Shown one piece after another: positions 4,872-60,590 of a DNA stretch of 64,000 nt. Source of the DNA: Neoechinorhynchus agilis (lineage: Eukaryota > Animalia > Acanthocephala); assembly GCA_051530055.1 (NCBI GenBank), contig CM121343.1, positions 4,930,389 through 4,994,388 of the forward strand, written 5' to 3'. Position 1 is the stretch's first letter. Each line of letters begins with the position of its first letter. Both the position numbers and the translations under genes were made by a program. The notes under the pieces were generated by a model. That model had not been told where the DNA came from, did not search any database, and saw only the letters and a program-made list of their open reading frames with translations.

Positions 4872-5849
4872 CTTACGATGGAAGGATTCTAAACCCTGAT
4901 CTTTTTTTGTTCAAATGAGTTTTTTTGTGTCTAAAATTTAAAGTCCAACTCACTTAGTTTATCTTCATCCCACTCTTCGTCGCTATTTTGGTGATTCATG
5001 ATTTTGAAAATCTTATCTAAAGAAGCTCCATTCGAGTGTGTGCATAAAAGCATTATTATCCGTGAAGTAGCCTCTCCCCCCCCCTACGCGCCACCGCCAT
5101 TTACGCTATAATTCGCACTGGTGACAGTTTCGTGACCCCTATCCGGTGATGATACAGATCAGTTGTATCCACTCTATCGCTCGCAGCGCAAACTCTGACA
5201 CTCAAACTGTGTCGTCGGTGTTTGTGTATCCAAAAGTAATAATGGTGCCACTAGGTCGCAGCTTTAGGAAGTTAAAATTGCCTTCAAAAAGGGTCTAGAT
5301 GAATTTATCTTCATTCACGAGATTATATCTACTTTAGCTATCATGAATTGTAAATAAACAATATTGATCTTAGACTTATTAGCTAATATTTAAGTCTTCT
5401 GCCGGTACGTATCCAAAGTTGAAACATTTGTAGATTTCATTATGTGTTGAAGTGAATATCCCTTAAGTGGCTGATCTTTCCGTGAGTACACAACCCGTTT
5501 TACCGATATGAAGGAAAAACACCGTCCGGATTCTCAGATATCTCCCGGGGAGACCAACGAGTTATTTCGTCCCCATCGGTCGTGTGTGTGTGTGTGTGTC
5601 ATCGGCACTAACGCATTAGAACTGGCTCAGAGTTTAAGTGATTTTATCCCCTTCCTTGGCCAAGATCAGTGGAAATGTTCACTTCAACACTTAAAAAATG
5701 TAACATATTATTTGAATTGTGGTGATCATAATCCCCGAGTAAAACTTATTTTGTCAATTGACGATACTTCGAAAGAGGAAGCACTCCGAAGAATTTTCTC
5801 TCTGTGATTCACATATTATAGAGCATGTTAGATGGATTCTAAAGATAAA

Positions 5850-7350
5850 TCGTGCAGAGACAATCCTTCGGGATGACGAAGTTAGAATTATCGTGAAGAT
5901 GCTCCCGGTCCAAAATACATTCTTATGAAATATTTCAAAGTCGCACGCTTCCTGTTTCGAAAAATTTCTTTACAATAAGATACCTGCTAACCGGGACTAT
6001 TTTCCCCACAATTCTAAATAAGACTAAATGTATATGTTTTCAAAAAAGATGAAGCCTTATACACAGTACGTGGAATTCGATTTGTGTTGCCTGTCCGAGG
6101 ATTTATTGGAAAATACCAGTACCATAAATTGCCCATTCGATCGCATTTAAAATTGAATTTAAAGAAGGTGTCGACGCATTAAAAGCATCAAATCGAGAAC
6201 GCTTCTCAGATGCGGTTCACAATAATCGTAAAGTGTGACATTATCGTTGGTTACACTGTTTCTCCTTAGCGTCAGTTTCTATGGCAGTTCAAAACTACTT
6301 TCTTGATTTCGATTTATATGCCTTCTTTTAAAAATCAAAGTAACGAATCGAAGAAATAAGTCATTGTCACTCAATCTGTTTTTTAGCATTGTGCTTAGTA
6401 AGAAATCTCAGACTTGGATTTAAAACAGTAAACGCAGGCATCGAAATTTTATCCCCTTGTCGAACTGCAATGGCGTTCTTGGTTATAGAAATTTCCTTTT
6501 TCACCATATTGAAGTTCAATAGAACCCGCTCTTAGTAGCTTCTTGTACATCTTTCATAGAGATTTAAGCGATTTACCCAACTACAATCGCGTTCTTGCTA
6601 AAAGAATTTTTCCATTTTCCCATGATATCCTTTAATCAACTGCTCCTGATTTATGATCTCATATTTCGTTTATTTAATTGCAAACGTGTTCTAGATCGAA
6701 AACTTAAAACAACGAATGTTGAATCTTGATTACAGATTCCAAATTGAATCTTAACCCACCATTATTTTAACATCGAACAAAACCATTTTTAGTATTTGCA
6801 GCGGCTCGATAATGCTATTAAATATAACAATTTTATCTTGATTTTTGTGCTCGTGTTCCTTCACAATTTTCTTCACCAAAAATAGTGCCATAATCGTATT
6901 TCTACTACACCATGTAGATTTTATTCGAGAAACGGGTGTAAAACAATAATTTTGCCGTTTAGATTACAAAATTATATGTGAACGCAACGAAGATGACCAT
7001 TATTTTCCTTTGTGCTAAGATTATTCTTCTCGCAAAAGAATGGATTCTGATCATATCCCCAGGTTACAATGTAAATGCGCGTGCTCTATAAATCTTCAAA
7101 TGTACAATTTCAAACTTGGTAATCCAGAATAACTTCCTTGATATCGAATTTCTACATTATGGAATAACGTAGCCTAAGAATTAATAGCAACAAATGATCA
7201 ATTGAAGTTGCCACTTCGTTATAGGTCATGATGCTCTAGTGAATATCTCAAAGATATCAACTGTAAAACAAGAAGGTAAATTCTATTCAGCGAAAAATGA
7301 AATATGTCAGTTCAATAATTTTAATCTGTTTCTATACGTCCAGTAAATTA
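5850..7350 (-). mobile_element. Degenerate RTE-like non-LTR retrotransposon reverse transcriptase
   Basis: Minus-strand translation with stops and frameshifts gives AVRQGDKISMPAFT (cf. GVRQGDTISPKLFT) near 6440-6480 and LFLRFVTLIF (cf. HLRFADDIVL) near 6330-6360. Confidence 0.5.
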
Positions 7351-9300: not shown

Positions 9301-10478
9301 CACAAGGATGTATCGGCAAACTGTGGCAATCTTTTCTATTTTAATCCTGATGTCCTACAACGCACAACATGATTGCAACAATTAGTTTGCTCCATATCGG
9401 CCGGATATTCTCCATGGTGAGTTCGTCTAAATTCCATTTTTCTAACAGAGCCACCCTGGTATTAATGGCTAAAAGATCTAAAAGTAACTTCAACATACAA
9501 TTAAAGTATCCAGATTTGTACAATATTTTACATTTCAAGAGATTGTAAAGTTGTTCTTATATTTTTTGGATTGTATTGGGGGGAATAAAATTAGAGAATA
9601 GTTTTGGCCACTTTTCTCTTAACTTCCCTGAAGGAAGTGTGAGATCATTTTCGGGCTTCACGACCCCCGGTACCTGAGTTCCTTTCATGCAAGCACCAAT
9701 TAATAACTTAAGCCCATATTGTAGATATCTGAAGAGGACCGCATTCGGTCGAAAATTTACAATAAGTCAATCAATATCGAGGAAGAGTAAAGTTGCACCA
9801 GAACAATTAATTGCTCTTATATATGTATTTTTGGTGATAAGAAAAATAGAGATTGATTTATTAATTTCCAAAATCCGTCCCGTCCGACTTTTTCAGGTTG
9901 CTTGCCCCTAAGAAGTCCGACGAAACGGACGAAATATTGACAAATCAATCTTTATTTTTCCTATCACCCAAAAAAACCGTATTCCAAAGAAAATATTTTA
10001 TTGAAGATGTGAAGTGGAAGCCTCGGTCATTGCTTGAAGAGGCGAGGCTTTCCCTTTCGAAATATCTGCAATATAATATTTTCTACGTGGAGGGGGAAAC
10101 GATCGCCACATCTTCAATTCTATCATCCCATAGGATTTTCTCTTTATGATTCAGAGTTCATTTCACGATACATTTTCACATGGCAGAAGAAGATTTGTAG
10201 ACCTTAGTAAATGTTACGTTCTTTGAGAGTTAAAAGACGCATTGAGCGTTCAAAAATCTTAATCACCATTCATCGATTTGTGTATATTTTGTGTTCTGAT
10301 TGCGATTCCAGCGCGTTCTTTGGTTGTGAAAAGTAGGAAAGTGCATGGTTCGGTTCTTTTTTTTGCTGGCGAACTTTTTAAACCCGCGCCTGGTGACACA
10401 GCGAAAGTATCGTCCAATGGCACTGGTTGTCGCGATGGAGTTTCAGGAGGAATCGTTTTTCTCGGTAGCATCTCTCCA

Positions 10479-13287: not shown

Positions 13288-13598
13288 CTGACAGGGCTGG
13301 AGCCAAAAGTGCTAAGGACAAATTATCCGCCGATTGAGCGACTGAAGATGTGGGTGATTGATCCGGTAGCGCTGTTGAATTCGCAACCACACAGAGCGGG
13401 AGATATGAACCGAAATCCGTCCAGTTCGGTCAACTTTTCGAACGGCACCCCGCCCCCAGTGTCGCGGTCTCTAAGCGAACACGAGCGAGAGAACGCGTCC
13501 AACGCATCGAACAAACCAAGAAGTTCCTTACGAGTTGTACGCGCCGTGGGCATATAGAGAAGGCAATGCTGATTTCTCTTTCTGTTCGATGGCTGCAC
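13288..13598 (-). pseudogene. Decayed, internally deleted duplicate of the Roquin 5' region (paralogous to about 23033-23546)
   Basis: Long shared strings, e.g. CACAGAGCGGGAGATATG, CAGTTCGGTCAACTTTTCGAACGGCACCCC, ACGAGTTGTACGCGCCGTGGGCATATAGAGAA and GCGACTGAAGATG. Confidence 0.85.
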
Positions 13599-14903
13599 AA
13601 AAGATATGGATTCGTTGAACCTACAGCGATATTTAAGAAACAAATTTTTAGGCGAGAATTTCATCTGATTTGAGATTACCGGTGCGAAAACTAAAATTCA
13701 CGTGGAAGTTTTTTAAACGATGCATTGAAATATGGATTAGTTGGCAGTGGACACAAAACCATGCTCCTTACTCACAATTTAGCGTTCCGAAATTCCATTT
13801 GCCATTTGTACGTACATTATGCCATCAGGCATTGAACTTTGGAATAATTTCTGAATTTTGAAAATTTAGGTTCCAGATCAATAACGCTGATTTTTCCAAG
13901 TCCATTTGCATTGTGTTGATTATCATTTTTAGCCACGTAGATTCGCCTTTTTTTCACAAAAAAATCATCGGATTCTGTGCGCAATTGCATTTTATTAGAA
14001 AAGCTGATAAACTACCCGAAGTAAATTGTAGGTTTCTATACATTAAATATTGAAGCTTGAAACAATGTTTTAATATTGTCGCTTCTTGAACGAAAAAGGT
14101 GAGAAATTTAGCTTTGCGACGATATTTTGGCATTTTCTTTAGACATTTCGGCATGATAGAATGAGTTACGGCTCCTAGTGGAGTGCAAAACACCGATCAC
14201 CAATAAATGTAACAACCTCACTTTTGCCAAATTTTAGCTGCCAAATAATATCCTTCATTTTTCAAGTATTAATTCTACTTTTATTCCTTAAAGAGAGACT
14301 GAGACGAATCACTGGTGATCCGAAGTAATGAGCATTCCTCCTAAATGCAACGGGGAATCATGCACCCGTCCTTCCGACCATTAGTGATCCAGAGCGGTAA
14401 CGTTAATATATATAAACTCTTGTGGAAAACAAAACTTATGGTTATAATTGAAGGAAGGTAAACGGTATTCGAATTTTTAATATATATATGCGATTCGGTT
14501 GTTTTACTCATCATATATTATCTATGGAATTTTTCCTTATTTTTTATCACATTGCTTTCAATAACAAAAGGAATTTATGACTTAATCTTGGTTAAATACT
14601 AAGCGTTGCTTTGAAGGAATACATTTTGAAAATCATAATTCCGTTTATTCGGTTACTGTAAGAGATTTCCCAATGCTTATCAACTAAATTGCGTAGATTT
14701 GACTTTTTTTATATACTGAAATGCTGACTTTCACAAAGTAATTAAACAGAGGTGTAAATGGTTACATTTTTTAAAGGTTGGGAGTTTTAGAGATCTACAT
14801 GGTGTCTTCGATATTTTTGAAGAATTTTCAAATTCACGGCTAATAATCAGGTCTATGATTTACTGCAAAATGTTTTAAAGACGCTTTCGCGTGAAATAAA
14901 TCT

Positions 14904-16479: not shown

Positions 16480-19400
16480 ATGGTTCGAATAATAACACGT
16501 TATTTATTAATCCACAAAAAAATAGGACCCATGTACCTTTGGGTCTTCATGAACACTCGAGTTTTGAAAGGAAAAATGAACGTGGCAGTTTAGTTTTGGA
16601 GTGGATTACAGGTCAGGTCGGATGAGAATTGGCGGTTATTGTTTGCAACAGTTTGCGAGGTTAATCTTTCCTCAGGTTCAACTCCTGTAATGATATCCGA
16701 GAAGATTGGGACCCATGGAAATGGGCCGGAGGTGGAGGGAGATGCGAGGCATAAAAGGATGAAATGAATTGGGATTGCGAGTGTTGTGCTCGTGTGAAAA
16801 AGGAAATAAAATGTGGTAAAAATTGTAGTGGTAGGAATGAGACGCGCTTTGATTGTTTGTTGAGAATCTTATAAAGGTGTTTAGTGCAAGGGGGAAATCA
16901 ACTGTGCAAATTTTAGACGATTGCGAACGAAGGGATAGTTGGTGAGGGAGGGTAAGATAAAGCTGCAGTAAAATTTAAGGAGTTCAGACGAAGGAACTCC
17001 TAAATGGCGGAGGGAAAGTGTAATGCGCGAATCCCATTTCAAGTTTTATTGAAATTGGATACCCAGAATTCTGAGGGAGGTGACTCGAAGGATGTCATTT
17101 GGAAGATCGGGGTAGGATGCGGAGTTACGAGAAAATGACGGGTGGTGCAGAAATCTTTGATGTGGATAGGTGGAAGGGTGATTGTGTAAGAAGGGTGAGA
17201 TCTTTGACATATAAGAAAAGCTTAGAGTGAGAGGAAAGAGGCTGAAGTTCGTTTATGAAAATATTTAAAAGAAGTGGAGACAGGACGGCACCCTGAGGTA
17301 CGCCTTTGGTGAGGGATATTCTGATCAAGGAGGTAAAAAGGCAGTGAATGTATTGTTTTCGATTGTGAAGATAAGGGACCAGCCGGCGGATCTGCCACAA
17401 GTTGAGACCAAAATCGGAACAGGTCTGGAGGAGTAGTGAATAATCTGCGGAGTCGAATGCTTTCGACAAATCCAGTTGAATAAGACGGCTGATGTGAGAG
17501 GAATTATTGTCCAGGTTGCGTAAGAGCGTGCCATAAATGCAAAGTAAAGCATCCGTTACGGAAAACGTGGTACGGAAGCCGAATTGAAGGGGCGATAATT
17601 TGTTGTTGAGAAGTGAAAAAAGGCGAGTTTTAATACATTTTTCGATGGATATAGGACGAAATGATTCAGTGGAAATTGGATGCCCATTTTTCAGAAGAAG
17701 GATCATTTTAGCAGTTTTTAGGCGACCGATGAGCTTGTACCGTCCGATAAACAGATAGTGTATTCGCCAATTCCAGTCTCCGTGTCAACGGGGTAATCAG
17801 AATCTATTATCAGATCGAGTGATTTATGGAGTTGAGAGCAGTGGTAAAGACGACATGGTTTCGCTAGTAGTTGACTAACTTTGTGTCGGTCATCGCGGTA
17901 TAATTGAGGAGGTGATTGGTCAACAGTATCAGCAGATATTTGGCCTACATCTTCCTCTACACTACTTAATCTTTTCCTTTTCCGTCTACTACGTTCATAG
18001 CAATCATTCGACTCTCCTTCGACTTCCATTTTAATCCGTATTAAAAGCTTGTCCATCAGTTTCTCGCATCCGCTATATGATCCACGAATGCTAAATACTT
18101 TGAACAGTCGTCGTTGAGTGGAGTCATCCCGAACGCATGCACTGAACCGAACGGACGTTGGTGACGTCCGCATGATTCTCATTTTATCAAAGATAGGAAT
18201 GTTCAAGATAACACGCTGACTTCCCGCGGATCTAAATAGAATTCGGGCCATCGTTGGTCTTTCAAATCCCGTTTATCCCAGACGGGTGAGCGAGGTTATT
18301 TTTGACGTTGAGGTGTGCGGTGGAGGGACTAATAAGGGCACAAATGGTCAGAGTTCGCGGAAGGAAGGAGTTTAGAGGCGGGTGAATAGGGGCTCGATAT
18401 TGGCGAATACTATGTCGAGTTGAGCGTCAAAACGTGTTGGGAAGTCAATTTGTTGATTCAAATCGTAGAAAGGTGACAGAGGAAATGGTTTATTGAAGTC
18501 GCCTGCAATTAGGAAATGATATGAATTTGCGAAGTCTATGAACTCCATTATGGACACCAGCTGATGTAATGAGTATTCAGGACGAGAGGCAGGAGGGCGG
18601 TAGACGCCAACAATCGTGAATTCACTAAGACCATTCCTTAGAGGAGCTTTGAAATGTGCGGCGATCAATTCTAGAGAGCCTATGAGTGATGAAGAGTAGG
18701 GTAGTGATTGTCGTACGAAGATTGAGACACTCCCCATGGACGGTCCTCGCAAGGAAAAGTGTCCGAGTAGGGTGGTTAGCAATGCTTCAGTTACGATGAT
18801 TACATCAGCTTTTGAAGTAGATGAAATGGGTGATATTTCATTTAGTTTAGGCAGGAGGCTTCGAGCGTTGGGGTAGATTAAGATGGGGAAGGAGATTTTG
18901 TGTTGGGTGGAAATGAGGGAGACTGAGGTCGCTTTGGTCGTCGTGGGTGATAAATTAAGGGAGGAATCGATACAGGTTGTCGATCTCAAAGGACTGACTA
19001 TTACAAAAAGGGAAGTACGGGAGCGAATCGAAAATTTGTGTTGGGATGAGTGATTGGCATCGTGAGGAACGAGTTTTGCGTTGAGAATTTGTGTGGATTA
19101 GCCACGATTGGATATGCCAATTTATGGTATATTTGTGAAGGGGTTGAGTGGTATTTCTTTACTTGTTTCAGGAGGGAGATCGTATTTAATTGGAGTTGCA
19201 CGAAGTCAAAGAAGTTGAGTAATCGCTTAACTCTACGAGTTTTTGGGATGTGTAACATGATCTACGATATTCGTTAAATCGAAGTTTTATACTAAGAAGA
19301 TGATGTCTGCATTGAGTTTGGAGGGGCACTGGAAATATGCGATGATCAGTTTTTATCTGAACAGATTCGAAAAGGAAGTTGTGAAGAAAGGAGCTTGTAT

Positions 19401-20228: not shown

Positions 20229-23162
20229 TTAATAAAAATAAACCGGTGACTTGAATTTTGGGTCGATTGACCCATCCCACGCACTAGAGTTAGTAATCCA
20301 TCCGTCCTCGTTAACGCTTATTTCGCCACATTCAGTGGGATCCTCTTCGTCTTGAATAACCGGGAGAGATTGCGCGTGTCTCAATGTAGACGAGTCGTTG
20401 TGCATCACTCGTTGCCAGGGACTTGCTGGATTGCTATTACCAATAGTTATGTCGAATCCGACATTAGATTCAAGCACTGTGTCCGAAGATACTGGAGATG
20501 AGCTCTAAAAAGGTATGACAAATGATGGATTAATGTAGCTTAAAATTTTAAACTTAAAGATGTACTGCCGCTTGTTAAATATGGTTTAGAAATTGTCGTT
20601 TAAAAGCAACAATCTAGCGAACTTCAAATAAATGTAGTTTCACAACCGCCGAATTTATAATTACGAGTCTATAGAATTCGGTATTGTTTACTTACATTGA
20701 ACGAGTTTTTAAGGTGGCGCCGGTCTCTGCTTATTGGACCATATTTGTTGTGAGTCGGTGTTTCCGAAAATGGAATAACAGTCTCGTGATCGTATGGTCT
20801 AATAAATGGCGATCAAAGGGATGTTCAGAATGTTAGATTGTACCTTGCTGGAATGGAGCTGAGGTAGTTTGATGGCGATGTGTGTTGCCGCTTGAAAGAG
20901 AGCTCCCGTTGCTGCTGTTGACGCAGGCTGGATGGATATAAATTGGGAACGCTTTCAACTCTTCGAAGAACGTCATAAGGATCATCAAAGCTTGCAACAG
21001 GCAATGGATGTAAGGCTAAATATTAGTTTTTGAGTGAAATGAAAGTATAGATTAGAACATACGAATCGGCCGAATTTGACTGAGCAAGTTTTGCTTTCTT
21101 ATTTGAAGGTTTTCGATTTGTTTATCGAGACTGATGATTGCATTCGTCAAATCTCCGTTGGTTTCTGCTCCTTTCATCAGTTGATCACGAATCTCAGGTG
21201 ATCCAAATGCGGCCGATCTTATAATGGGTGGTGGTGGTACCTCAGCGTTGGTATTTCCGTATGCAGCGGTGACGGGCACAGATGAATTTTGGCCCACGTT
21301 CCCAGTTCCATCAAAAGCTTTTAACGGTATTAATAAATCCGATCTATGGTTTGATTGATACACGACAGGTGTAAGACCCGGCGGCGGCTCGACTGTGGGG
21401 GGTGCTTGTAGTTCATATAGTGAACTATTTATTACGTCCGCGATAGAAAGCTGGGACATTGGCTGTTGCTGTTTGGATGGCTGAGAAGGCGGCAGTGGTG
21501 CAGCGATCGGTGGATGTGTTTGGGCCGCCAGAACTCTGGGAGGCATCGAAAGAGATGTCGGTTTCGAGCCTGCTGATATAGACGAGTGAGCAACCTGAGA
21601 AGGCATGAACAATGACATCTTTGGCACTTTGGAAGTTGACACTTGTTGGACAAGTGAAGACATGCTGTTGGACCATGTTCGGCGATGAAGTTTCTGGTTA
21701 GCTCCATTCTGGCAGTCGACTGCAGCCATGACGGATGACACCGCAGCCGCCACATCGTTCAGATTAAGAAATTCTACGGAGTTTGATAGTGAGTTTCTCT
21801 TACTGCAGATGATTGGATCAGATCGATTATGTCGTCGAAACGCTGATTGGATAACGTGAGACTTGGTCGAATAAATAAACAGGCAATTTGAAATTCGATG
21901 AAGACAATTAAATAGAGTCGATTGAAAATCGGTCCATTCTGCATTCCACTGCGGTATTTGAGTATGGTAGACATGATTACAGTCCGCGACAACAGTGGGC
22001 AGGAGTTTGAATGGATCCCCATTATATTGAAGGACGTGCTTAAGTTCACTTATTATTTGAGAGAAGGATTGAACGCCGGGGTGTATGATGGCGTTCGTTG
22101 AAGAGCACTGCTGTGAAGTGGATGAACACTGCTGATGATCATCTGCTTGAATAGGTTGCCTGCTTATCCGATCAATCACAGCGTTCATATGATATTTGTG
22201 ATTCGCGTCACCGTACAATAGAATAGACCAGGTTTCGGGCGAAATTCGAAGTCCCGCGTCCATAGCAATTTGAGCGATTTGAGCGTCGTGTTCACGTCTC
22301 AGCGCTTCATAGGTGCGAAACTCTTCCTTTAATTGCATTAGCGAACTCTCTTCTTGTCTCTTTTGCAACTGCAAAGAATCTTAAGGAACGTGTTGACTAA
22401 GCGGAATGCAACTAACCTTGAAACACGACGCCCTATAAAGTAATTGAACTACATGGCCGATACTGGTTTTCGATGCCCTCGGGAAATGAGGTTGAAGTTT
22501 CTGCACAACAAATAATACGAGCATTTTTCTCGACAAGGCAGATCCATCGCCTAGTGCAACGAGAACTAATTTTAAAGTTTCCTCTTGCATTGCTAAAAAG
22601 GAAAGGTTGAAGGTATTTCAAAGTGCGTACATTCTATCATACCTGGGCCTAAGAATTGGCAACCGCGATTTCTGACAGCTAACCAAAGACTTTTTGTGAT
22701 TTGAGTTTGATTCTGATAAAGCATCAGAAAATCTATTGCAAGGCGTTCAATCAACGATCGGCAATTCCGCAATGCGTTATTGAAGTAAATAAGTCTTGCG
22801 CTACTATCTTCATGTGGAAGTGGTTGTTTAGCGATTCCATTGATCAATGTCATGAGCCGTCGAATGGCCGGTCTGGTCAATGACTGTTGCTTACTAAGTC
22901 CTCCTCCCGTGATTTTGGTTGACGACGGCACCGTATAATTTTGAATACAATCCATCATGTCAACGAGCTGATCGCTGATACTGTCTTCTTTAAACACGGC
23001 ATGCCTGTTACTGTCAATGCAAGCGTTTCCGGTGACAGTGCCGGAGCAAGAAGTGCTAAGGGCGAAATTACCCGCCGGCGCCACCGCCGCTGAAGCGACT
23101 GAAGATGCGTTTGGTGGATCCGGTGGCGCTGTTGAAGTCGCCACAATATCTTGGTTGTTCAT
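20229..23162 (-). CDS. RC3H1: Roquin (ROQ-domain RNA-binding protein); multi-exon
   Basis: [15 protein letters not shown]|[53 protein letters not shown]|[38 protein letters not shown]-terminal YGPISR motif near 20730. Confidence 0.95.
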
Positions 23163-23164
23163 GG

Positions 23165-23830
23165 AGTCGTCGTCGTCGTCGTCGTCTAAAGCTTAGAGCG
23201 CCCCGCGTATATATCTCCCGGAACACTTTTTTTTCACGCTTCCTGCGCTTTGATTGGCGTTAGTGACTAAGTGAAACGACGTGCGAGCACACACAGAGCG
23301 GGAGATATGGAAGCTTTTCTCATTCAGGACCGAAATCCGTACAGTTCGGTCAACTTTTCGAACGGCACCCCACCCTCCCCCTTCCAATGCTGCGGCCTCT
23401 AAGCGAAAACGAGCGAGAGAACGCGCCCAACGCATCGAACGCGACATATACAACAAACCAAGAAGTTCCCGACGAGTTGTACGCGCCGTGGGCATATAGA
23501 GAAAAGAAGACAATGCTGATTTCTCTGTCTGTTCGATGGTGGCACATTTACCACCACCACCACCGCCGCCGCCGCCGCCACCGACGCCGAGTCGCACACG
23601 CGCCCAAACTTCTCTCACCGTGCTGCTTTGCCGTCATCGTTTTCTTCATACGCTGAATGCACGGCGCGTAGGCATGGAAGATCCGGCGCTAAACGCTGTG
23701 CCATCACGTCGACGACCCTGTGCCCCACGCACGCACGAGCGCGCGCGCGAGCGAGCGAGTAACCACTGCTGAGAGGGGACGCAAGGAAGTGACCACTCCG
23801 GGTTAGGTTCCCTTTTTAAATTTAGAAAAG
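23165..23830. promoter_or_regulatory. CpG-rich island upstream of Roquin with (GTC)n and (CCA/CCG)n microsatellites
   Basis: Clearly GC- and CpG-rich relative to its flanks. Minus-strand CCAATC and CAGGAAG motifs. Repeats at 23165-23187 and about 23550-23585. Confidence 0.55.
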
Positions 23831-30610: not shown

Positions 30611-31186
30611 AAGATCCAATGATTGCTTTGATCACACCAGGAAGCTATTAGTTGGAACGGCAGCAATGCGCCATAAATGGAGGCGTCTTCTTCGGATTGG
30701 GTGCGTGTGTACGATTTAAGCGGCGCTATCTACGTCACTCTGTTTTCTTACGCGTCTGCACACGAGAAGATCAGGCGTGAATAGTTCGCGGCGCAAAGGG
30801 AGCGGGGAAACGCTTTCTACTCCCTTTTAAACATTGAATGCTGGATGGATCAGTCGCGGAGGAACGTATTCTCAAATGAGGGTATCGACAAATCGCTTTG
30901 GTACGTTTCCAATAGGATTTAATGCCATTTGGGTTTCGACAAGGAAAATATTTCAACAAAAACTGACTGGGTTTGACATTCCGTAGTTGTGCTGAGAGGG
31001 TCAAGTGGACTAAAGCTCTTGATCCCAGTTTGTTGGGTCAACTGGTTCGAATCCGTTACCACCAATGACGTACGGAGACGAAAAAGCTCGTTGAAGGGAG
31101 GAGGTATCTGAGAATCCGGAGGAATGCGTGGTTTGGCTTTATGCCTAAAAAATAAGCCGGGTATAAGGGACAAACTAAAAATTTAA

Positions 31187-31410
31187 TATTATTTTGGTGA
31201 TAATAATCCCGGTAATAGCACATTTGATTTATTGGAAATATTTCGCGATAACACGAACTCGAATATTTAAAAACTTAAGCAATGACTGATGAGGCGAGGT
31301 CACCTCGCGAAATATATCCAATAAATCAAATGTGTTATTACCGGGAATATTTTGACCAAAATAATACTTTGACTAATCCGAAGGATTTTTTTATCGATGA
31401 TTAAAAATTT
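31187..31410. repeat. Foldback (inverted-repeat) element related to the 48-49 kb array
   Basis: Arms TATTATTTTGGT..AATAATCCCGGTAATAGCACATTTGATTTATTGG..TCGCGA and TCGCGA..CCAATAAATCAAATGTGTTATTACCGGG..ACCAAAATAATA. Followed by CCGAAGGATTTT..TCGATGATTAAAA as in the array. Confidence 0.85.
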
Positions 31411-31523
31411 AATGATGAAATAATGATAGTTCGAATGCGGTCAATCGACTTGGCACTTCATGAAGAAGCATACTTTCGCCAGGTCGGAATCTGCACAGTT
31501 ATGTCCGCGGACAAACACGTTAT

Positions 31524-31807
31524 CAGCAGCTGAGCTTCGTAAGGTTGCAAAATACGCCGATTTTACAAATTCTCATCATTTTGTCCCCTTCGCAGTGGAA
31601 ACCTTAGGAGCTTTCGGACGTGCGGCGAGGAGTTTTGTTCTCGAACTGGGGCATCGACTGATCAACTCGACCAATGACAGGAGGGCTCGCTCGTTCCTAG
31701 TGCAGAACATATCCTTGGCTATCCAGCGAGGAAACGCAGCGAGTGTCTTGGGGACGGTGAAGGACAATTGAGAATAATATAAGTTAATAAAATCATTTAA
31801 TTTAAAA
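31524..31807 (+). mobile_element. 5'-truncated CRE-clade non-LTR retrotransposon (restriction-like endonuclease end) with target-site duplication
   Basis: AAELRKVAKY..FVPFAVETLGAFG..FLVQNISLAIQRGNAASVLGT. A-rich tail. AAACACGTTAT is repeated at 31513-31523 and 31808-31818. Confidence 0.8.
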
Positions 31808-37400: not shown

Positions 37401-38533
37401 TAAAAAATGGATTTAAGTTAAAATCGCAGCATTATTTTTAAAAAATGTCTTGCTCTTCCAGACGATATGTAAAAATTATATAAAATTACAAATGGTTTGG
37501 ATTTAAGATCTTTGAAAAGATACTTTAATTTGATTGTTTAAGCAGCAAAATCCTCGTTTTTAATCTCAAATTAAATCACCGGATAAAGTTCCTTCTTTAT
37601 AGTGGTGGTTAAGGAGCCCAGAAATCTACTGATCCGTTTCCTGGTTTAATATAGAGCGGAAGTACAAATGAGATATAGTTGTCCAACTTTTAGGTGTTGA
37701 AAGACCGAACTTTTGGAATGCACAAACGTTTTAATATTATTCGATTCGTTCTTGAAACTTTAAACCGCTTCTTCGTTCGTTTTATTTTGTTTCCCATGTA
37801 CCTCTGGGTCCTCGTGATCACTTTAGAGTTGATGACGGATACGGAGTCCCCTCCGATATTGGTCCTACTTGAACAACATGCTTCAGAAAAAGCTAAGTTT
37901 TGATTGGTGCTAATGTCTTTAAAGTTTTGTATCGATTTAAAGAGGCTTCAAATACATATATTTAGTTTGTCCACTGTTTCGCAAAATTTTCTATTTTCCT
38001 CCATCAAAATGAGAACACGTCTCTTCAAATTGCCACTAGAGCATTCGGTTGTGCGGCTAATCGGTTCTCATTGATTCTTAGATGTGTTCAGGAAAAAATT
38101 AAAGTGCTATAAAACTGCTTTACGGAATCTCTTGCTTGCACATTGATCATTTTCATGCTCTACAGCGCAAATAATGCGTTTTCTGATGCCAGTACCAGAT
38201 CTAGTCGTCCACAACCATCCGGAGCATCTTTGGTGCTGAGTAAATAGTCGTGAATATTTCTACCTTTAGCTCGGAAAATCTACAATAATTGGTGAAAATT
38301 ACTGAAGTATTCGCTTGCAATGTCAACTTTGCTAAGCCGAGATCAAACCTCTAAACTCTCATTTGTCAAGCCTTATTGGTAAATTGAACATCAAAAATGG
38401 CAGCGTTCTAAAAACAAATCCTGAAATTTTATATTTATATTATCGAGTAGATCAACAAATACGTTACGCCTTTGGCGTCCAAAAAATATTAACAAAACGA
38501 CACTTGTTGGTCCTGTTGAAAAGATAATTCATT

Positions 38534-38706
38534 GTTATTTGTCGATAGGAGAAAATAAATGAAATTAAGAATTTAGTGATTTGATATTTCGATCCACTAC
38601 CTCGGATCTTCTTCAGCTAAAAGCAAGATCTGATCCGAAATAGTGGATCGAAATATCAAATCAATAAATTCTTAATTTCATTTATCTTCTCCTATCGACA
38701 AATAAC
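38534..38706. repeat. Near-perfect inverted repeat: 75-bp arms and a 23-nt loop
   Basis: 38534-38608 matches the reverse complement of 38632-38706 at 71 of 75 positions (counted by hand). Confidence 0.95.
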
Positions 38707-39177
38707 TTGTTGGTCCGTTTTCTGGATAAAAGGAAATCGTTGTAATATATTTTTGAAATATATCGATAAAGAGTACACAATTCCTCCCTTATTATTTAAT
38801 AAAAAGTCCTATTTATAAACCCGAAATCCAGGGGGATCTTTTTAGCCCACATATTACATACAACAACACCAGCGGTCTAGCCATCGCCCGTCTCATACGA
38901 AAACAAACAAAATTTTCGTAACAGACGTCCATATCTGAGCCGGGCCCTCCCAAGTCGTTGGATGGATGGCTCGGAACGTCTCACATCATCAACAGCTCGA
39001 TTAGACAAAGTGTTTTCCGCTGCACGCATTTTTCGGCTGTTTTAGTCCTTCCGTGTTAACGGACGCGAAGATTAAGATCATTTGCGCAACATTGTGTGGC
39101 AAAAAAAGTAAGAGACTTTTAGCTTAGGCGCTCGACCCTATTTCCGATAAGCAGTAGCATGACGTCACAGACCTAGG

Positions 39178-40956
39178 GAAAGGTCGGATAAGAGTCGAAA
39201 TTGGGAGTGATGCGATCCGGGGGACTGAGATTTCTCCGCAGAATAATCCGGTAGTTTATATCGCCTACAACTTTCTAGTGAATCTATCCAAGTCGAAATT
39301 CAGGGTGAGTGGGTCTTATCGACTAAAGCACCCGCCGCGAGTAGCTCGCCTCAAGTGTCCTCGAACTGACGAAAGGTCCGATAAGATTCGAAATTCGGCG
39401 AAAAGCGAACCTTCAAGTCCGAGATTTCGCAGTCCAATAATCCGGTGGGTTTTATCGCCTACAACTTTCTAGTGGGTCTATCCAAGTGAACATAAACTGG
39501 CTCATGGATAAGTCGGATAAGGTTCGAAATTCGGGGTGATGCGATCCGGGAGGAAGGAGATTTCTCCGCTGAATAATTGGATGGGCTTCATCGCCTACGA
39601 CGCCGCCGCCCCTGCGTGAGTGGTTCGCTCTTAGTGTTCTTGAATTGACGAAAGGTCGGATAAGATTCGAAATTCGGCGAAAAGCGAAACTCGAGGATCG
39701 AGATTTCGCAGTCCAATAATCCGGTGGGTTTTATCGCCTACAACTTTCTAGTGGATCTATCCAAGTGAAGTCGAAATTTGGGGTGAGTGGGTCTTATCGC
39801 TTACAACATTCTAGTGGATCTATTCAAGTGTCCTCGAACATACGAAAGGTCCGATAAGATTCGAAATTCGGGGCGATGTGATCAGGGAGGACGGAGATTT
39901 CTCGGCCGAATAATCCGGTAGGTTTCATCGCCTACGACCACGCTACCGCGCAAGTGGTTCTCCCCAAGTGTCCTCGAATTGACCAAGGGTCCGAAAAGAT
40001 TCGAATTTCGGGGTGATGCGCACTTAAAGGACGGAGATTTCGCAGTTCAATAATCCGGTTGGTTTTATTGCGTACAACTTTCTGGTGGGTCTATCGAAGT
40101 GAACTTGAACTGACTAAAGGATAAGTTCGATAAGAGTCGAAATTCGGGTGACGCGATCCGGGAGGAAGGAGATTTCTCCGCTGAATGTGATCCGGTAGGT
40201 TTCATCGCCTACTGTCCCACCCCTGCGCATGTGGTTCGCCCCAAGTGTCCTCGAATTGACCAAGGGTCCGAAAAGATTCGAATTTCGGGGTGATGCGCAC
40301 TTAAAGGACGGAGATTTCGCAGTTCAATAATCCGGTTGGTTTTATTGCGTACAACTTTCTGGTGGGTCTATCGAAGTGAACTTGAACTGACTAAAGGATA
40401 AGTTCGATAAGAGTCGAAATTCGGGTGACGCGATCCGGGAGGAAGGAGATTTCTCCGCTGAATGTGATCCGGTAGGTTTCATCGCCTACTGTCCCACCCC
40501 TGCGCATGTGGTTCGCCCCAAGTGTCCTCGAATTGACCAAGGGTCCGAAAAGATTCGAATTTCGGGGTGATGCGCACTTAAAGGACGGAGATTTCGCAGT
40601 TCAATAATCCGGTTGGTTTTATTGCGTACAACTTTCTGGTGGGTCTATCGAAGTGAACTTGAACTGACTAAAGGATAAGTTCGATAAGAGTCGAAATTCG
40701 GGTGACGCGATCCGGGAGGACGGAGATTTCTCCGCTGAATGTGATCCGGTAGGTTTCATCGCCTACTGTCCCACCCCTGCGCATGTGGTTCGCCCCAAGT
40801 CTTCTCGAATTGACGAACGGTCTAATAAGAGTCGAAATTGGGGTGACGCGATCCGGGAGGACGGAGATTTCTCCGCTGAATGTGATCCTTTGGGTTTCAT
40901 CGCCTACTGCCCCGCCCCTGCGCAAGTGGTTCGCCCCAAGTGTCCTCGAATTGACG
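39178..40956. repeat. CpG-rich tandem satellite with ~135-140-bp monomers (two ~190-bp variants) and a 277-bp dimeric higher-order repeat
   Basis: Recurrent GATAAGA(T/G)TCGAAATTCGG, GGAGATTTC and ATCGCCTAC. GACCAAGGGTCC recurs at 39981, 40258 and 40535 (period 277). Confidence 0.95.
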
Positions 40957-41449
40957 TAAGAAAACTGCATAACACACGCAGCCACTAAGTTTTCTTACAA
41001 CACGCACACACACAGGATGTTTGTCTAAGGCTACCCGATATGGCGGCACTAGGGCACAGCGTCTCACCTTTCACCTCACGAGTGCACCGAGAAGATATAC
41101 AGAAATCGTTAGCTTTGGGGATCTTTTGTTCTCCGCTGCGGTTCTTCATTTTTATTCCTGTCCATATCCGCGCTCGTGGTATCCGGGGAGTAGACGTGGT
41201 TTAATTTGAACTGTTTAGTTATCTTACAAAAAGAATGCACGTGCCGCAGTAGGCGGTTTTTGTGTGCGTTCTCATTTTGATGGTGTTAGACACGTGCCGC
41301 TTTTGTCGCCATTCGTCAGCTTAAATAGGAATCCTAGCTTTCCAATAGTCTTTTTTCCTAGTCTGATCCGCATAGTGAGGGCATTTATAAATTCGTCCAC
41401 GACGACGTGTTGAAAAATTATGTTTTAGATTGTTAATGATATTCCCATC

Positions 41450-45421: not shown

Positions 45422-46276
45422 TGATTTTGTTGCCCATGCCCATTACAAATAATCTGGTAACCATGGCAACTGAAGCTCGATTCGTGGTAAAAAAGCGATC
45501 TAGATGCCTTCTTGTAACAAATGGGCGAAATGCAACACCCAAATCTCTTAAGGGCCTTTGACTAGTTTTTCGTATATTTTATAGAACTGACTATTGGATT
45601 CCTCTATAATGCCGAATTAAATTAGGTCGTCCTTAATACGACTTAAAAGATACGTTCGACTTCGACTCGCCTGTCCACTTCATGATTTTTAATGAAATCC
45701 GGCGGATCGTGAATCGTTCGTATTTTGCCATTGTTTATTCTTAAATTTTCTAGTGAAAAAATTAAAGCTTCGAGGATTGATCGATGTAAATGAAAATGTT
45801 TACAGATTCCGGCAGTTTATCGTCGAAATTCCTCCGATTAATACGATCGATCTGAACTCATGTCCTTTTGTAAATTCGTCAGCAAGTTTGCATAGAAACA
45901 TTTTAATTCAAATAAAAGTATTTTTTTGCATCGTTTCTATCGGCAAAAACGAAATTCAATAAACAAATATTGTATTTGTAATCGATATTGATGCGATCTT
46001 TCTTTATTGAAATTTGCCGCTTGTTAATTTATGCAATTAATTTGAAAGCACAATAGTTCATTTTAGAGATTACTGGCCAAAATGAAGGCCAAGTGTTTTT
46101 TTAAAATCATAGCCCAATGCATTAGACTTTATAAAGACACTACGAGAAGCCTGTAATGGTTGGCTTTTCAGAAATCACTTCGAGTGTAAAAAATTTTTCT
46201 TTTTGCAATAGGTCGTCCAAGTTGAAAGCGTTCGAAACATATAAAAGTGGTACCCTCTAACCAATATCTGCACGTA

Positions 46277-46373
46277 CAGAACATATCCTTGGCTATCCAG
46301 CGAGGAAACGCAGCGAGTGTCTTGGGGACGGTGAAGGACAATTCAAAATAATATAAGTTAACTTTAAAAAAAA
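46277..46373 (+). mobile_element. Second, shorter 3' fragment of the same CRE element
   Basis: The first 67 nt are identical to 31703-31769 (QNISLAIQRGNAASVLGTVKDN), followed by the same AATAATATAAGTTAA tail and poly(A). Confidence 0.85.
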
Positions 46374-46865
46374 TGCTTATTATTGTTTAAAAAAAATTAA
46401 TTTAAAAAGTACATTTTATGCCTTGAAATTATACGTCTGAAATGTATCAATATAACAAACTTTGTGAATTTATTAATGATGGAGAAGCAAATAAAAAGAT
46501 CCATGTAAAAATCATGGGAAGTTAAAGATAGCGCCTATTGCGATTTATTTAAATTTTAAAAAATAAATCGTTATAAGAATTCGATGAGCTATAAATGAAT
46601 TTTTAGAGATAAATTGGTTTTATCTAAACAGGTCAAATTTTGCTGTTCTCAAATCCGCTGGGTTTGTTGTTCGCATGAACGGACATGCGTGAAAGTAAAA
46701 TAGCGCTGTGATTAGATTCGCGGGCAAAAATTTGTCATGATTCAGTGATCATTCTCGCTTCGCCTGATCTTCAATTACATAAACTGGGATTTTTGCGTCT
46801 AAGAATGGATCCAGATTCAAAAGACCACCGTGTTTTTTGACTCTGTTGCAAATTAGATCGCAAAA

Positions 46866-47957
46866 ATGTGGCTTGACACACAGGTAAAATAAAAGAATTT
46901 CGATCGGCTTTAACGTTTTTAGTTGGTGAGTCTTAAGTGCAATGTTTGCAATCAAGAAATAAGTAAAGGTAAACAATCTACTGATTTGGATGGCTTAAAT
47001 GTTTTTATTCAGGTGACCAGCAATACGTTATCCTTTATCCAATCAGAACCATCTATCACATAAAGTGTATAAAATGTAACATTTGCTTTAAAGACATTTC
47101 AAAGCAAAGAACGTGCGTTTTGATTCAAAATATTCTGGTTTGCATGCAAGATTATGCTACCTTGTAAGCTTAATGAGTAAATTGAACTAATGTTCAAATC
47201 AATACTGTTTAGTCTCCGGCCAAGTAGCATGAAATCGAAGAAACGATGCTTTGTTTGCTCTGGGAACATTTATTTTGGTGAACTGGTTACTCGAATCGGA
47301 CGAATTTATGACCAACGTCTAGTTCATGTGAGATGTTTCAACTGTAAAGTTTGTGGGAACTATATTAATGCGAATGATTGCTATTATACCGTATATTGTG
47401 GAATTATTTGCTCGCAATGCATTCTCGAATTCGGAAAATCTGATTGGGATAATGACAGTAATCGATCAGAAGTTCAATTGGATGCTGAGGTTCGAAATGT
47501 GCACAAAAAGATGATGGTCGAAAATAGATTCAATATTACTCAGTCATCTCAGCGATGTTGTGATTGCATCCTGTTAAGTCACGCTGAAAGCTCATGTGCG
47601 TGGACAACTTATTTAGCTCATTATGAACGAAGAAAACGACCAAGGACTACGTTCAAGTATCAACAATTAAAACTTCTACAGGAGCATTTCGATCGCAATC
47701 ACAATCCTGATGCAAACAGCTTGAAACAATTATCGATTGATACCGGATTAGACAAAAGAGTACTCCAGGTTTAGTAATCTTACGTTTTTTTAAACTTATC
47801 ATCATTATAAAGGTTTGGTTCCAAAATAATAGAGCCAAGTATCGAAAGCAGGTAATATCTCATACATCAAAACTATTTAATTTAAAGACATTATTAGTTC
47901 AAGAAACAAAAGACTGAATCCAGTGATTCGCGGGATAAAAATGATCAATTGATTTAG
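46866..47957 (+). CDS. LHX2/9: LIM-homeodomain protein, Lhx2/9 (apterous) class; about 6 exons
   Basis: LIM1 KCNVCNQEI|SDQQY..YHIKCIKCNIC..LVCMQDY. LIM2 CFVCSGNI..ELVTR..HVRCFNCKVC..CSQC. Homeodomain RPRTTFKYQQL..NHNPDANSLKQLSIDTGLDKRVLQ|VWFQNNRAKYRK. Confidence 0.85.
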
Positions 47958-48022
47958 TGCCACACAGAATCAATAAAAGTATACGTGCATGTGGATTTCA
48001 AAATATTAATTTTAACAAATAG

Positions 48023-49345
48023 CAAATTATACCTTTTTTGAAAATAATCCCGGTCATAACATATTTGATTCATAGGGGAAATACGTTATGACCAGGATTT
48101 TTTGCAAAAAAAGTATAATTTGATTAACCCGAAGGATTTTCACTGTCGATGATTAAAATGATTTTAAAACTGCCGATTGGCTTCGAAGAGGCACACAATC
48201 TTGTACGCCTTAAGTTTTTAAAGTCACAAATATTTAAAAACTTACAAGCAACAACCTTGATAAAAAGGCGAACAAGATTGTGAGCTTCTCCGAAAACAAT
48301 CATTTGAATTTCTTCACCATATAAAACAACGAATTGTATAAATGCATTCAAATTTATCATCGACAAAGAAAATCCTTCGGGTTAATCAAATTATTTGTGT
48401 TTGAAAATAATCCCGGTAATAACTTATCAAACAATGACTGAGGAGGCGGCGAGGTTACCTCCTTCGAGATGTTTCCCCTATGAATCAAATATTTTATGAC
48501 CAGGATTATTTTCAAAAAAAAGTATAATTTGATTAACTCCAAGGATTTTCTCTGTCGATGATTAAAATGATCTTAAAACTGTCGATTGGTTTAGGAGAGG
48601 CACAATCTTGTACGCCTTTTGATCTAGGTCGTTTGGAAGTTTTTAAATATCTGTGAGTTTAAAAACTTACAAGCAACGACCTTGACCAAAAGGCGTACAA
48701 GATTGTGTGCCTCTCCGAAAACAATCGGCAGTTTTAAAATAAAATCATTTTAATCATCGACAAAGAAAATCCTTCGGGTTAATCAAATTATTTGTGTTTG
48801 AAAATAATCCCGGTAATAACTTATCAAACAATGACTGAGGAGGCGGCGAGGTTACCTCCTTCGAGATGTTTCCCCTATGAATCAAATATTTTATGACCAG
48901 GATTATTTTCAAAAAAAGTATAATTTGATTAACCGGAAGGATTTTCTCTGTCGATGATTAAAATGATCTTAAAACTGTCGATTGGTTTAGGAGAGGCACA
49001 ATCTTGTACGCCTTTTGATCTAGGTCGTTTGGAAGTTTTTAAATATCTGTGAGTTTAAAAACTTACAAGCAACGACCTTGACCAAAAGGCGTAGAAGATT
49101 GTGTGCCTCTCCGAAAACAATCGGCAGTTTTGAAATAAAATCATTTTAATCATCGACAAAGAAAATCCTTCGGGTTAATCAAATTATTTGTGTTTGAAAA
49201 TAATCCCGGTAATAACTTATCAAACAATGACTGAGGAGGCGGCGAGGTTACCTCCTTCGAGATGTTTCCCCTATGAATCAAATACATTATGACCGGGATT
49301 ATTTTCAAAAAAAGTATAATTTGATTAACCGGAAGGATTTTCTGT
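48023..49345. repeat. Tandem array of ~396-bp units (~3.3 copies), each made of two hairpin modules (~268 nt and ~117 nt)
   Basis: CGACAAAGAAAATCC recurs at 48361, 48758 and 49154. Module B (48524-48791) and module A (48797-48913) are each self-complementary. Confidence 0.95.
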
Positions 49346-50935
49346 AAACCTACTATAAAAATCTTTACTTTGAAGTGAGCTGACGGTTCTACTTTTCTAT
49401 TTGTGTTGAAGAACTCCGTTTTTTTTCTCACAAAAGCGCAAAAAAGATGAGGGTGGTTCATAGAAACGGAAAACACGAGCTTTTCAAAAGGCACTTAGCG
49501 CCACATGGAGCAAAAGTTGTACTTCCCCAAATGCGTGCTTCTCTATAGATTTGAGCATATTGGTTACGCCATTCATAAAATTATTCCATTCTTTATGGGG
49601 TACTTTTGCGAACATCTCCGGAAAATAAGTCAAATGGCGCCGTGTTCACTGCGAAGCGCCGGAAAATTCGTTAATATACTTCGAAAACAATGCCTTTTGA
49701 TGTGTTCTTCGTTAAAAATCCCAAAGGTGGAAATGAGTCTAGATGACCAATTTATTCCCCACAGTGTTTAAAATGAACGCGGGATTGAATCCAAATTTGC
49801 CATTTCTGATCAACTTTACCGATCAAATACGAATGTAAATAACCGGATTTATCCGAGAAGGGCACGCGATCCAGACAACGATTAATACGAAGGAGGGTTT
49901 TAACCGAAATGGCAAGGGAGTCTCCTCAAGTTCGCCGACTTCCAAATTCATCGATCGCGATAACTTCAATATCGATTTCGCTCATCGACCTCGCGGTTTT
50001 TTGAAGGAAGACAGCATTCAATTTTTTTGATTTCAGTCCTTCAAACAGTGAGTGCAATTTTTTAAATCCAGTTCTTAGTAAATTTCTCGCTGTACGCCGA
50101 GCTCCGTGAGTTATTCAAGGGTTCAAATGCGCCTACTCGTGTTTAGATCGTGACGTCATTGCATATTGGAGCGCCGGCACATAATTTCATTTTGGCACTA
50201 TGTGGAATGCCATTCTTCTACGAGTGATTGAATTCCTCTCAGTGAGCGGAAATCTTAGTTGCAGTTTTATTCGTTATTGCATTCGATTCTCAATCCTTGT
50301 CAAATCTAAATTGCCTTAGGATTTGACGGTACCATTGAAGATAGAAGACAAAACTTTTAAATAATTTAACACGTTAATCGCCTCTTTTTTTGCGATCAAA
50401 GTTTTAAAGTATTATTCTCCTTTATGATTTCAACGATAAAACGTATACTGCAGGTGGATGCTTTCTTTTTTGTTACCGAGCACTTAAAAATTTCTTTATT
50501 CATTTCTAGATAACTCAGATTGTCATAAAAATATGTGAGTATATTTCATCATGTTCAAAATATTTGCAGACTTCATTTGCCTATTTATAAGCTGACACAT
50601 TAGAGTTTAATGAGTCGTCGTTGATAGAACCTTGGATATTTATATCAATAGCTACACTGTATACCGATTGCAAACCAAAGGTTTATTTTTGGCGTAAAAT
50701 GCGCAATAGTCGAAAAAGTGTACGTTTTGAGGCAAACTAGAAATCAAAAAATAATATATTCTGTATTTGCTCGCGGGTGATTCTAACGGTCCACATCACT
50801 TTCATATTGGTGGAAAAATCGATCGAGTGGACCTTTTTACTCAGACATTTGCATTGTGTGCCACTCTTCCGATTGTTTAGTCGTCTCTACATTTCCAATC
50901 AATCGAAAATACTTCTTCTATATCCTGATCATCAG

Positions 50936-59504: not shown

Positions 59505-60590
59505 CAACAACAACTTTCTTCATACTTTTCCCTTCTCGGGGTTGCACAAAAACTAGCAGTCCTAGGACTTCACACACCCCTCCTGCCCCGTTTCTCTAAA
59601 ACGTCGGTCCTCAACCACACAATCTTTCCATAGTTTTCTCGGCCTTCCGCGTCTCCTGGACCCTTCGATTTCCATTTAGTCAACTTTTCGAATAAATCGA
59701 TTCGGCTCTTTTCACCATATCGCTCCATTTGATCCTCCGTTTTGCGATAGCTTCCTTTACGTCCTCCACCTTCAGCGAGCCCCGAACCGCATTATTTGTG
59801 ATCATTTCTTGCCTGGTCACCTCACACATCCATCTAATCATTTTCATTTCATCCTCGCCTGCATTCGCTTGATGTGATTGGCACCGTCCAATATATAACA
59901 TGGCTGGTCAGATTGCTATCTTGAAAACTCTACCTTTCAAGACCAGAGATACTTTGCTATCACACAAGATCTCAGTTAGACTTTCCACTTCATACATCCG
60001 CTATTTATTCTCAATGAAATCTCGGCGGTGATATCGTTTTGCATCGACACTATAGAGAGCCGAGATACTTGAATTTGTCAAATTTCTGCAGCGCTGTCTC
60101 TTGAAGGAAACTGCTTTCCGTTCTCACATAGACTGGTTTCTCCACCGGGAAATTTTTTAGACCTTGACTTTCCAGAGCTTCCCTCCATTTCTCTAAGTCA
60201 TTGTTGAGATCCTGGGAATTATTGCTGGAGAGGACGATGTCGTCGGCGAAAAGCATGTTCCATGGCGGACCTCTACTGATCGGTTTGCTGATTTCATCCA
60301 TAGTGACTACAAACAAATAAGGGCTCAAAACTGAACCTTCATGCAATCTCACGTTCACCGAGAAGCTATTCGTATTACCAACTGGCGTCCTTATATTTAC
60401 TTTGCTCTGCCTGTACATGTAGTCTCGGGGTAGAGTTTTCTTCTAAGACAGTTCCATTACCAGTTTTCTAGAGACAGTGCCATTGGCTTTCTCGAGACCA
60501 ATGATCACACTGTGTATTTCCCTTCGCGTTTTTCATGGCATTTCTCATTTAACTGGCGTAACGCGAATACAGCTTCGGTACTACTTCTGC
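59505..60590 (-). mobile_element. 5'-truncated RTE-clade LINE
   Basis: VRLHEGSVLSPYLF..MD, WNMLFADDIVL, LEKWREALESQGLK, FKYLGS and EMKMIRWMCEVTRQEMITNNAVR are typical of RTE. Confidence 0.85.

Follow-up and report, generated by a model that had tools for sequence, protein, structure and literature searches.

The closest described systems are the foldback elements FB, Tetris and Galileo of Drosophila, the last known from D. buzzatii. Their copies are non-coding and combine long terminal inverted repeats with a modular interior of tandem repeats. The target duplication measures 9 bp for FB and 7 bp for Galileo, and the cognate transposases of FB/Tetris/Galileo-like elements are MULE-like or P-like. 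Rolling-circle elements make no flanking direct repeats; Helentron-derived elements with central tandem repeats can seed satellites. Satellites are also seeded by MITEs, small hairpin elements that are AT-rich, non-coding and dispersed, with tandem amplification at one locus. The long terminal repeats of Tetris in D. virilis include 220-bp repeats, which vary in number and have a stretch in common with the terminal domain; the repeat number shifts by duplication, the target duplications are 8-10 bp long, and Galileo is similar (PMC4079207). Among hairpin-RNA loci, Drosophila esi-2 at CG4068 has been described as a set of 20 palindromic repeats of ~260 nt (PMC11840564).

We analysed a stretch of 64 kb, referred to as the window. 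It is gene-dense metazoan DNA with 39 % G+C and contains genes for MCM7, an E2 enzyme, anillin, the condensin Cnd2, Roquin, SCAI, FAM65, a kinase and others. In a search of 5.8 billion proteins, the closest match to the N-terminal MCM7 exon (371-1375, minus strand) came from a bdelloid rotifer with 46 % identity; the source lineage is thus without a close relative in the searched protein collections. The subject of this study is a tandem array of hairpins at 48023-49345. It is probably a non-coding, non-autonomous DNA element of the foldback type (MITE-like) with an expanded interior, and most likely a repeat of an ordinary type, not a novel sort of system.

Anatomy of the tandem array

The array comprises 3.3 units of 396-409 bp, in total 1.3 kb. 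For 48356-49343, TRF reported a period of 396 with 2.5 copies, 98 % matches and a score of 1911. A diverged first unit was added by self-blastn, which aligned 888 bp with 90 % identity at a shift of ~409 bp. The flanks of ~80 nt each (47940-48022 and 49346-49430) did not resemble the unit more than shuffled sequence did, thus the array limits of 48023 and ~49345 stand. A continuation of the array into these flanks was rejected, the similarity being not significant, and the junctions are unique and clean. Each unit consists of a long hairpin, module A, and a shorter module B. The parts of the array are as follows.

48023-49345, plus strand: whole array (TRF, repeat search, self-blastn, unrelated flanks)
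48023-48122, no strand: module B0, a compact 100-nt hairpin with the left arm 48023-48081 as left terminal inverted repeat (fold z = -9)
48113-48396, no strand: module A1, a diverged long hairpin of 284 nt with 102 bp (fold and unit alignment)
48386-48531, no strand: module B1, an imperfect palindrome with an outer stem and a small inner stem (fold z = -3.5)
48522-48793, no strand: module A2, a 272-nt hairpin with 115 bp (fold)
48797-48916, no strand: module B2 (fold)
48918-49189, no strand: module A3, a 272-nt hairpin with 114 bp (z = -22)
49193-49323, no strand: module B3 with the right arm 49265-49323 as right terminal inverted repeat (59 nt, 95 % complementary to 48023-48081)
49324-49345, plus strand: truncated tail T, the first ~20 nt of the module-A arm (half-unit alignment, flank k-mer search)

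Module A is a near-perfect hairpin of 272 nt with 114-115 base pairs and a loop of 8 nt. It folds with -156 kcal/mol, compared to -55 +/- 4.6 for shuffled sequences (z = -22), and none of 200 shuffles was as good. In the first copy, A1, 18 nt are deleted from the left arm and 28 nt inserted into the right arm. At 48302-48357 in this right arm, a segment of ~55 nt occupies the place of 28 nt of the consensus; the 8-nt inverted repeat ATTTGAAT/ATTCAAAT marks its borders, and it could have arisen as a tiny secondary insertion. For module B, the terminal copy at 48023-48122 is the only clean hairpin in the array. The internal copies, e.g., 48797-48916, have only an outer stem of 14-18 bp and an inner stem of 7 bp (z = -3.5), and B1, when aligned to a dispersed copy at 31.2 kb, appears as a derivative whose left arm has an internal deletion. 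A previous sequence-only reading of the window had described units of ~396 bp, each built from a hairpin of ~268 nt and another of ~117 nt. The unit length and the long hairpin were recovered in our analysis; the shorter hairpin is real in the terminal copy and was overstated for the internal ones.

Units 2-4 are mutually 98-99 % identical. Unit 1 is diverged (78-90 %, three indels) and differs from unit 2 in 91 alignment columns, the three indels included. The final 130 nt of units 1-3 are 100 % identical although the rest of unit 1 is diverged, which implies gene conversion or a history, such as staggered duplication, that is more complex than simple serial duplication. An equivalent description of the array is a series of ~198-bp half-units in alternating orientation, each reaching from a B centre to an A centre. 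Half-units of units 2-4 share 98.5-99 % identity in the same orientation, but ~77 % in opposite orientation. The palindromes are thus old, and the latest growth was an ordinary direct duplication of a 396-bp block. Rolling-hairpin, inverted-duplication or hairpin-primed copying was rejected as the recent mechanism, because copies of the same orientation are far more alike than inverted ones. Near-identical last units and a diverged first unit had also been stated in the previous reading, as now expressed by 98.5-99 % against 78-90 %.

A site of 3 nt in the left arm of module A varies between the units. It reads CCG (48130-48132) in unit 1, TCC (48539-48541) in unit 2 and CGG (48935-48937) in unit 3, with CGG again in the partial unit 4; perfect pairing with the right arm occurs only in the unit-1 version. 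Apart from this site, units 2 and 3 differ in only four other columns.

Against its reverse complement, the complete array gave an alignment of 1.3 kb with 69 % identity. Its outer inverted repeat, 48023-48081 against 49265-49323, is 59 nt long and 95 % complementary, in agreement with the ~58 bp noted before; the left end pairs equally well with 48869-48927. This repeat is partly trivial, since the array starts and ends in a palindromic module and inverted ends are unavoidable. The expression 'palindrome of palindromes' used for the locus in the previous reading describes largely a geometric consequence, the array having one and the same palindromic module at its start and its end. With the right arms of units 2-4 the left terminal arm shares 94 % identity (47/50); with the internal left arms, in which an internal deletion is present, the value is only 73.5 %. 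The two outermost arms hence resemble each other more than the inner ones, as would be expected if both were the terminal repeats of the element. On the right side, the tail T of the array stops ~10 nt before the tail end of the dispersed copies. A k-mer search of the flanks revealed no direct repeat around the array.

The array lies downstream of a plus-strand gene that encodes LIM domains and a homeodomain, the latter interrupted by an intron of 47 nt. Among solved structures the homeodomain matched best to Lhx9 (E 3e-18), followed by Lhx4 (1e-11) and LMX1A (1e-9), which agrees with the Lhx2/9 label given by the previous reading. Past the homeodomain follow 21 more codons and a TGA at 47915-47917. 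An AATAAA motif is located at 47972-47977, and the array begins 45 nt downstream on the same strand as the gene, as had been noted. The homeodomain exon ends at 47851/47852 with CAG/GTAATA, a plausible splice donor; if this putative donor is used, the array may sit in the last intron. The array could thus be placed in the 3' flank or in the last intron of the gene, and transcription through it is conceivable in either gene arrangement.

Dispersed family members and other repeats of the window

The family occupies four loci in the 64-kb window, the array and three dispersed ones.

31188-31401, plus strand: dispersed member, B hairpin with 35-nt tail T (blastn, fold z = -14.4)
5848-6010, minus strand: old degenerate member in opposite orientation, T left and B hairpin right (nhmmer E = 1.4e-4)
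9828-9973, no strand: hairpin element with 38-nt arms, 87 % (arm tip akin to the arm at 31.2 kb; 0/1000 shuffles reached the score)

The copy at 31.2 kb was already known from the sequence-only reading, and two further copies are added here. It has arms of 62 nt with 92 % complementarity, a loop of 56 nt and on the right side the 35-nt tail T, which matches the start of the module-A arm. An exact 12-nt direct repeat, TAAAAATTTAAT, flanks the copy at 31176-31187 and 31402-31413. In random window pairs, the chance of a shared word of at least 11 nt between flanks was 0.00075, and that of a shared 8-mer 0.026. The loop has 21 of 23 nt in common with the centre of A1 and 27 of 30 nt with the inner B left arm, thus modules A and B are related. 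The copy at 5848-6010 aligned locally over ~165 nt, which was reached by none of 1000 shuffles, and has an 8-nt repeat, ATTCTAAA, on either side (5836-5843 and 6011-6018). For the 9.8 kb copy no flanking direct repeat was found; it probably represents a diverged subfamily.

The dispersed copies measure 146-214 bp. Their flanking repeats have a length of 7-12 bp, varying with where the element ends are drawn. The copies at 31.2 kb and 5.9 kb have opposite orientations and coincide at both ends within a few nucleotides, thus the mobile unit is the B hairpin with the one-sided tail T; these ends are defined by two loci, two of the four copies being degenerate or distant. Four loci in 64 kb hint at an abundant family. 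The dispersed, apparently mobile hairpin family proposed in the previous reading is upheld by these four loci and by the direct repeats that flank dispersed copies. Pattern scans of metagenomes yielded no match in the first instance; a second scan returned 10 loci, all in GC-rich bacterial coding sequence, that shared only a 21-mer. A literature search with sequence strings of the hairpin, of a 277-bp repeat and of the adjacent element (both described below) retrieved only a chance primer match.

Further repeats were observed in the window. An unrelated element at 38514-38704 consists of a 173-nt hairpin with 75-nt arms (95 % complementary) and a one-sided tail of 20 nt, flanked by the exact 12-nt direct repeat ACTTGTTGGTCC at 38502-38513 and 38705-38716. 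Its layout of hairpin, one-sided tail and 12-nt repeat matches that of the 31.2 kb copy. Membership in the family was rejected, the sequence similarity being not significant. It seems characteristic of this genome to contain small hairpin elements flanked by duplications. A second tandem array, unrelated to the first, occupies 39178-40960. TRF reported for 39852-40871 a period of 277 bp with 3.7 copies, 94 % matches and a sub-period of 141 bp; older degenerate units extend back to ~39178. This array is richer in G+C than its surroundings and has open frames on both strands.

Two 5'-truncated copies of a transposable element, at 31430-31800 and 46274-46380, share 96.6 % identity in their final 88 nt and terminate with TTTAAAAAAA. 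The longer copy encodes a 113-aa C-terminal domain that belongs to no Pfam family; homologues are multi-copy unnamed proteins, e.g., of the butterfly Pararge aegeria. The copy at 31430-31800 is located ~30 nt from the 31.2 kb hairpin. A link between the hairpin family and this A-tailed element (31430-31800, 46274-46361) was rejected: the two are adjacent only at 31.2 kb, at 46-48 kb the Lhx gene intervenes, and the homologues of the element are such multi-copy unnamed proteins. The neighbourhood at 31.2 kb is treated as a coincidence. Just upstream of the same hairpin, at 30990-31075, a tRNA-like stretch with the box-B motif GGTTCGAATCC was observed. ARAGORN called no tRNA in it, and it may represent the head of a SINE or a remnant of a tRNA. 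A dispersed repeat pair, 13289-13599 and 23033-23546, has 74-81 % identity over ~310 bp, the latter copy adjoining a low-complexity run that codes for poly-Gly/poly-Pro. Fragments of reverse-transcriptase (RVT_1) open reading frames at 17128-17784 and 60053-60442, both on the minus strand, represent retrotransposon remnants in the window.

Explanations for the array

Of the options named in the sequence-only reading, a Foldback/Galileo-like element fits best. The ends of the array are those of the small element, and the interior repeats derive from the terminal arms, further copies of which are held by the interior units. The basic mobile unit would have ~165-215 bp, a hairpin with ~60-nt arms (module B) and a one-sided tail T of ~35 nt, and would insert with a short target-site duplication of 8-12 bp, presumably by the action of a DNA transposase. 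In the array, both ends of the family appear to be kept, the tip of a B arm on the left and a B arm with T on the right; because these ends match those of the dispersed elements, the array is read as one family member with an expanded interior. This interior would have grown from tens of nucleotides to 1.2 kb. A block of 396 bp, to be read as B right arm, T, palindromic core, inverted T and B left arm, would have been duplicated in direct tandem, most recently yielding units 2-4. Unequal exchange or replication slippage between the repeated arms is the likely cause. The long hairpins would then be a DNA-level legacy of inverted duplication rather than a maintained RNA structure, and the array would be neutral. 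Its right end is short by ~10 nt and a flanking duplication is absent, thus the copy in the array is probably immobile.

The MITE character is seen in the dispersed copies, which stay below the ~800 bp taken as the limit for MITEs and have open reading frames without homologues, and in inverted repeats of 62 nt (92 %, 31.2 kb), 59 nt (95 %, array) and 38 nt (87 %, 9.8 kb), with an asymmetry introduced by T. In units 2-4 no open reading frame exceeded 67 aa, and the longest frame through B and T, 71 aa, had no homologue in the protein database. Neither a transposase nor an autonomous partner was found in the 64-kb window. As with MITEs that seed satellites, dispersed small hairpins, AT-rich and non-coding, are amplified in tandem at one locus, but the array has only 3.3 units and is not a satellite.

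The family shares the non-coding copies, the terminal inverted repeats and the modular tandem-repeat interior with the foldback elements, but differs in several traits. The arms reach up to 1.7 kb in Tetris and only ~60 nt here. The repeated block consists of two palindromes, so that the interior alternates in orientation. The family has a one-sided tail, its flanking repeat may be 12 bp long, and the host is a metazoan that is not arthropod-like. A duplication of 7-12 bp is compatible with the lengths observed for foldback elements and not diagnostic. Several observations argue against a foldback element: no transposase or autonomous partner in the window, the lack of a flanking duplication at the array, the ambiguous duplication length, the number of only four copies and the full identity of the final 130 nt of units 1-3 beside an otherwise diverged unit 1. 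The flanking repeat is exact with 12 nt at 31.2 kb, 8 nt long at 5.9 kb and absent at 9.8 kb as well as at the array. To our knowledge, an exact 12-bp duplication fits no standard DNA-transposon superfamily.

Such a 12-bp repeat would also be consistent with target-primed reverse transcription, so that one may think of a non-autonomous, SINE-like retroposon that is mobilised by a LINE or a Penelope-like element and has an RNA folding into hairpins. A variable right end and long flanking repeats would result from target-primed reverse transcription. Among the alternatives this one ranks first, although it is unlikely. The exact 12-nt flanking repeats exceed those of most DNA transposons, the repeat at 31.2 kb opens with AAAAA, which resembles an L1-type nick site, and a run of A closes the tail. 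The window contains reverse-transcriptase fragments and a 5'-truncated A-tailed element, one copy of which lies 30 nt from the 31.2 kb copy. Arguments against a retroposon are the coincidence of both ends in two dispersed copies, which leaves no variable 5' truncation, the long terminal inverted repeats and the lack of a poly(A) or simple-repeat tail. An internal head similar to a pol III promoter and a hammerhead ribozyme are likewise missing.

Slightly less likely still is a hairpin-RNA gene for endo-siRNAs. Read-through, a 3'-UTR or an own transcript would provide stems of ~130 bp for cleavage by Dicer. The architecture is strikingly similar to Drosophila esi-2/hp-CG4068, also with tandem palindromic repeats of ~260-270 nt by the 3' part of a protein-coding gene. 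The 272-nt hairpins have tiny loops, a potential to fold is present in the array, and it starts 45 nt past the AATAAA of a same-strand gene; with the donor at 47851/47852 in use, the array would be intronic and transcribed anyway. However, AATAAA motifs inside the right arms of module A would end transcripts of the plus strand. The comparison of A1 and A2 revealed no compensatory changes, 14 one-sided changes that break a pair and three that preserve it as a wobble, with limited power from three A copies but a clear direction. Substitutions break pairs and none is compensated, thus nothing indicates selection on an RNA structure. In contrast to esi-2, the pairing decays between the units, and the sequence belongs to a dispersed repeat family. 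Its flanking direct repeats indicate a transposon origin. Arms derived from a target were not found: the arms had no detectable similarity to any gene or other sequence of the window beyond the repeat copies, nor to any entry of the protein database. No Rfam family matched at the gathering score; the E-value mode returned only generic long-hairpin miRNA models far below their thresholds, the best being MIR856 with 74.5 bits against a threshold of 297. Just as improbable are, taken together, a domesticated or emerging endo-siRNA gene fed by Lhx2/9-type transcription and a transposon group with an unusual 12-bp duplication.

It is very improbable that the array is a locally born micro-satellite or an assembly artefact without a mobile history. 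The missing flanking duplication would agree with either, and near-identical units of 396 bp are a type of sequence mishandled by assemblers. On the other hand, related sequences occur at three other loci, and the graded substitutions and indels between the units together with unique, clean junctions are unlike an artefact of collapse or duplication.

Metazoan retrozymes and hammerhead satellites resemble the array in their tandem units of 170-400 bp and in transcripts that would fold rod-like. They were rejected as an explanation, since cmscan at E up to 10 revealed no hammerhead. The loop of the 31.2 kb copy holds CUGAUGA, a 6-bp stem and then GAAA, for which the array copies have GAGA; manual inspection of this string revealed no helix I.

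Least probable of all is a Helentron/HINE-type rolling-circle element with expanded internal tandem repeats, an option of the sequence-only reading that the analysis did not support: the asymmetry of hairpin and one-sided tail would suit it, but direct repeats flank the copies at 31.2 kb and 5.9 kb, no Rep/helicase was found in the 64-kb window, the ~60-nt arms far exceed the subterminal repeats of Helentrons, and the latest amplification was a direct duplication with a period of 396 bp.

Significance for the genome and the family

The finding matters mainly for annotation. A hairpin family of the MITE/foldback type with at least four loci in 64 kb is present in a metazoan genome without a close relative in the public protein collections. 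Replication instability and the formation of dsRNA could occur at the long near-perfect palindromes beside a developmental gene. If the endo-siRNA interpretation were true, a transposon-derived tandem with 130-bp stems would be the counterpart of esi-2 in a distant, poorly sampled metazoan lineage. As an internally expanded foldback element, the probable explanation, the array would be a clean, small example of a transposon interior that starts tandem expansion, the first step from a transposon to a satellite.
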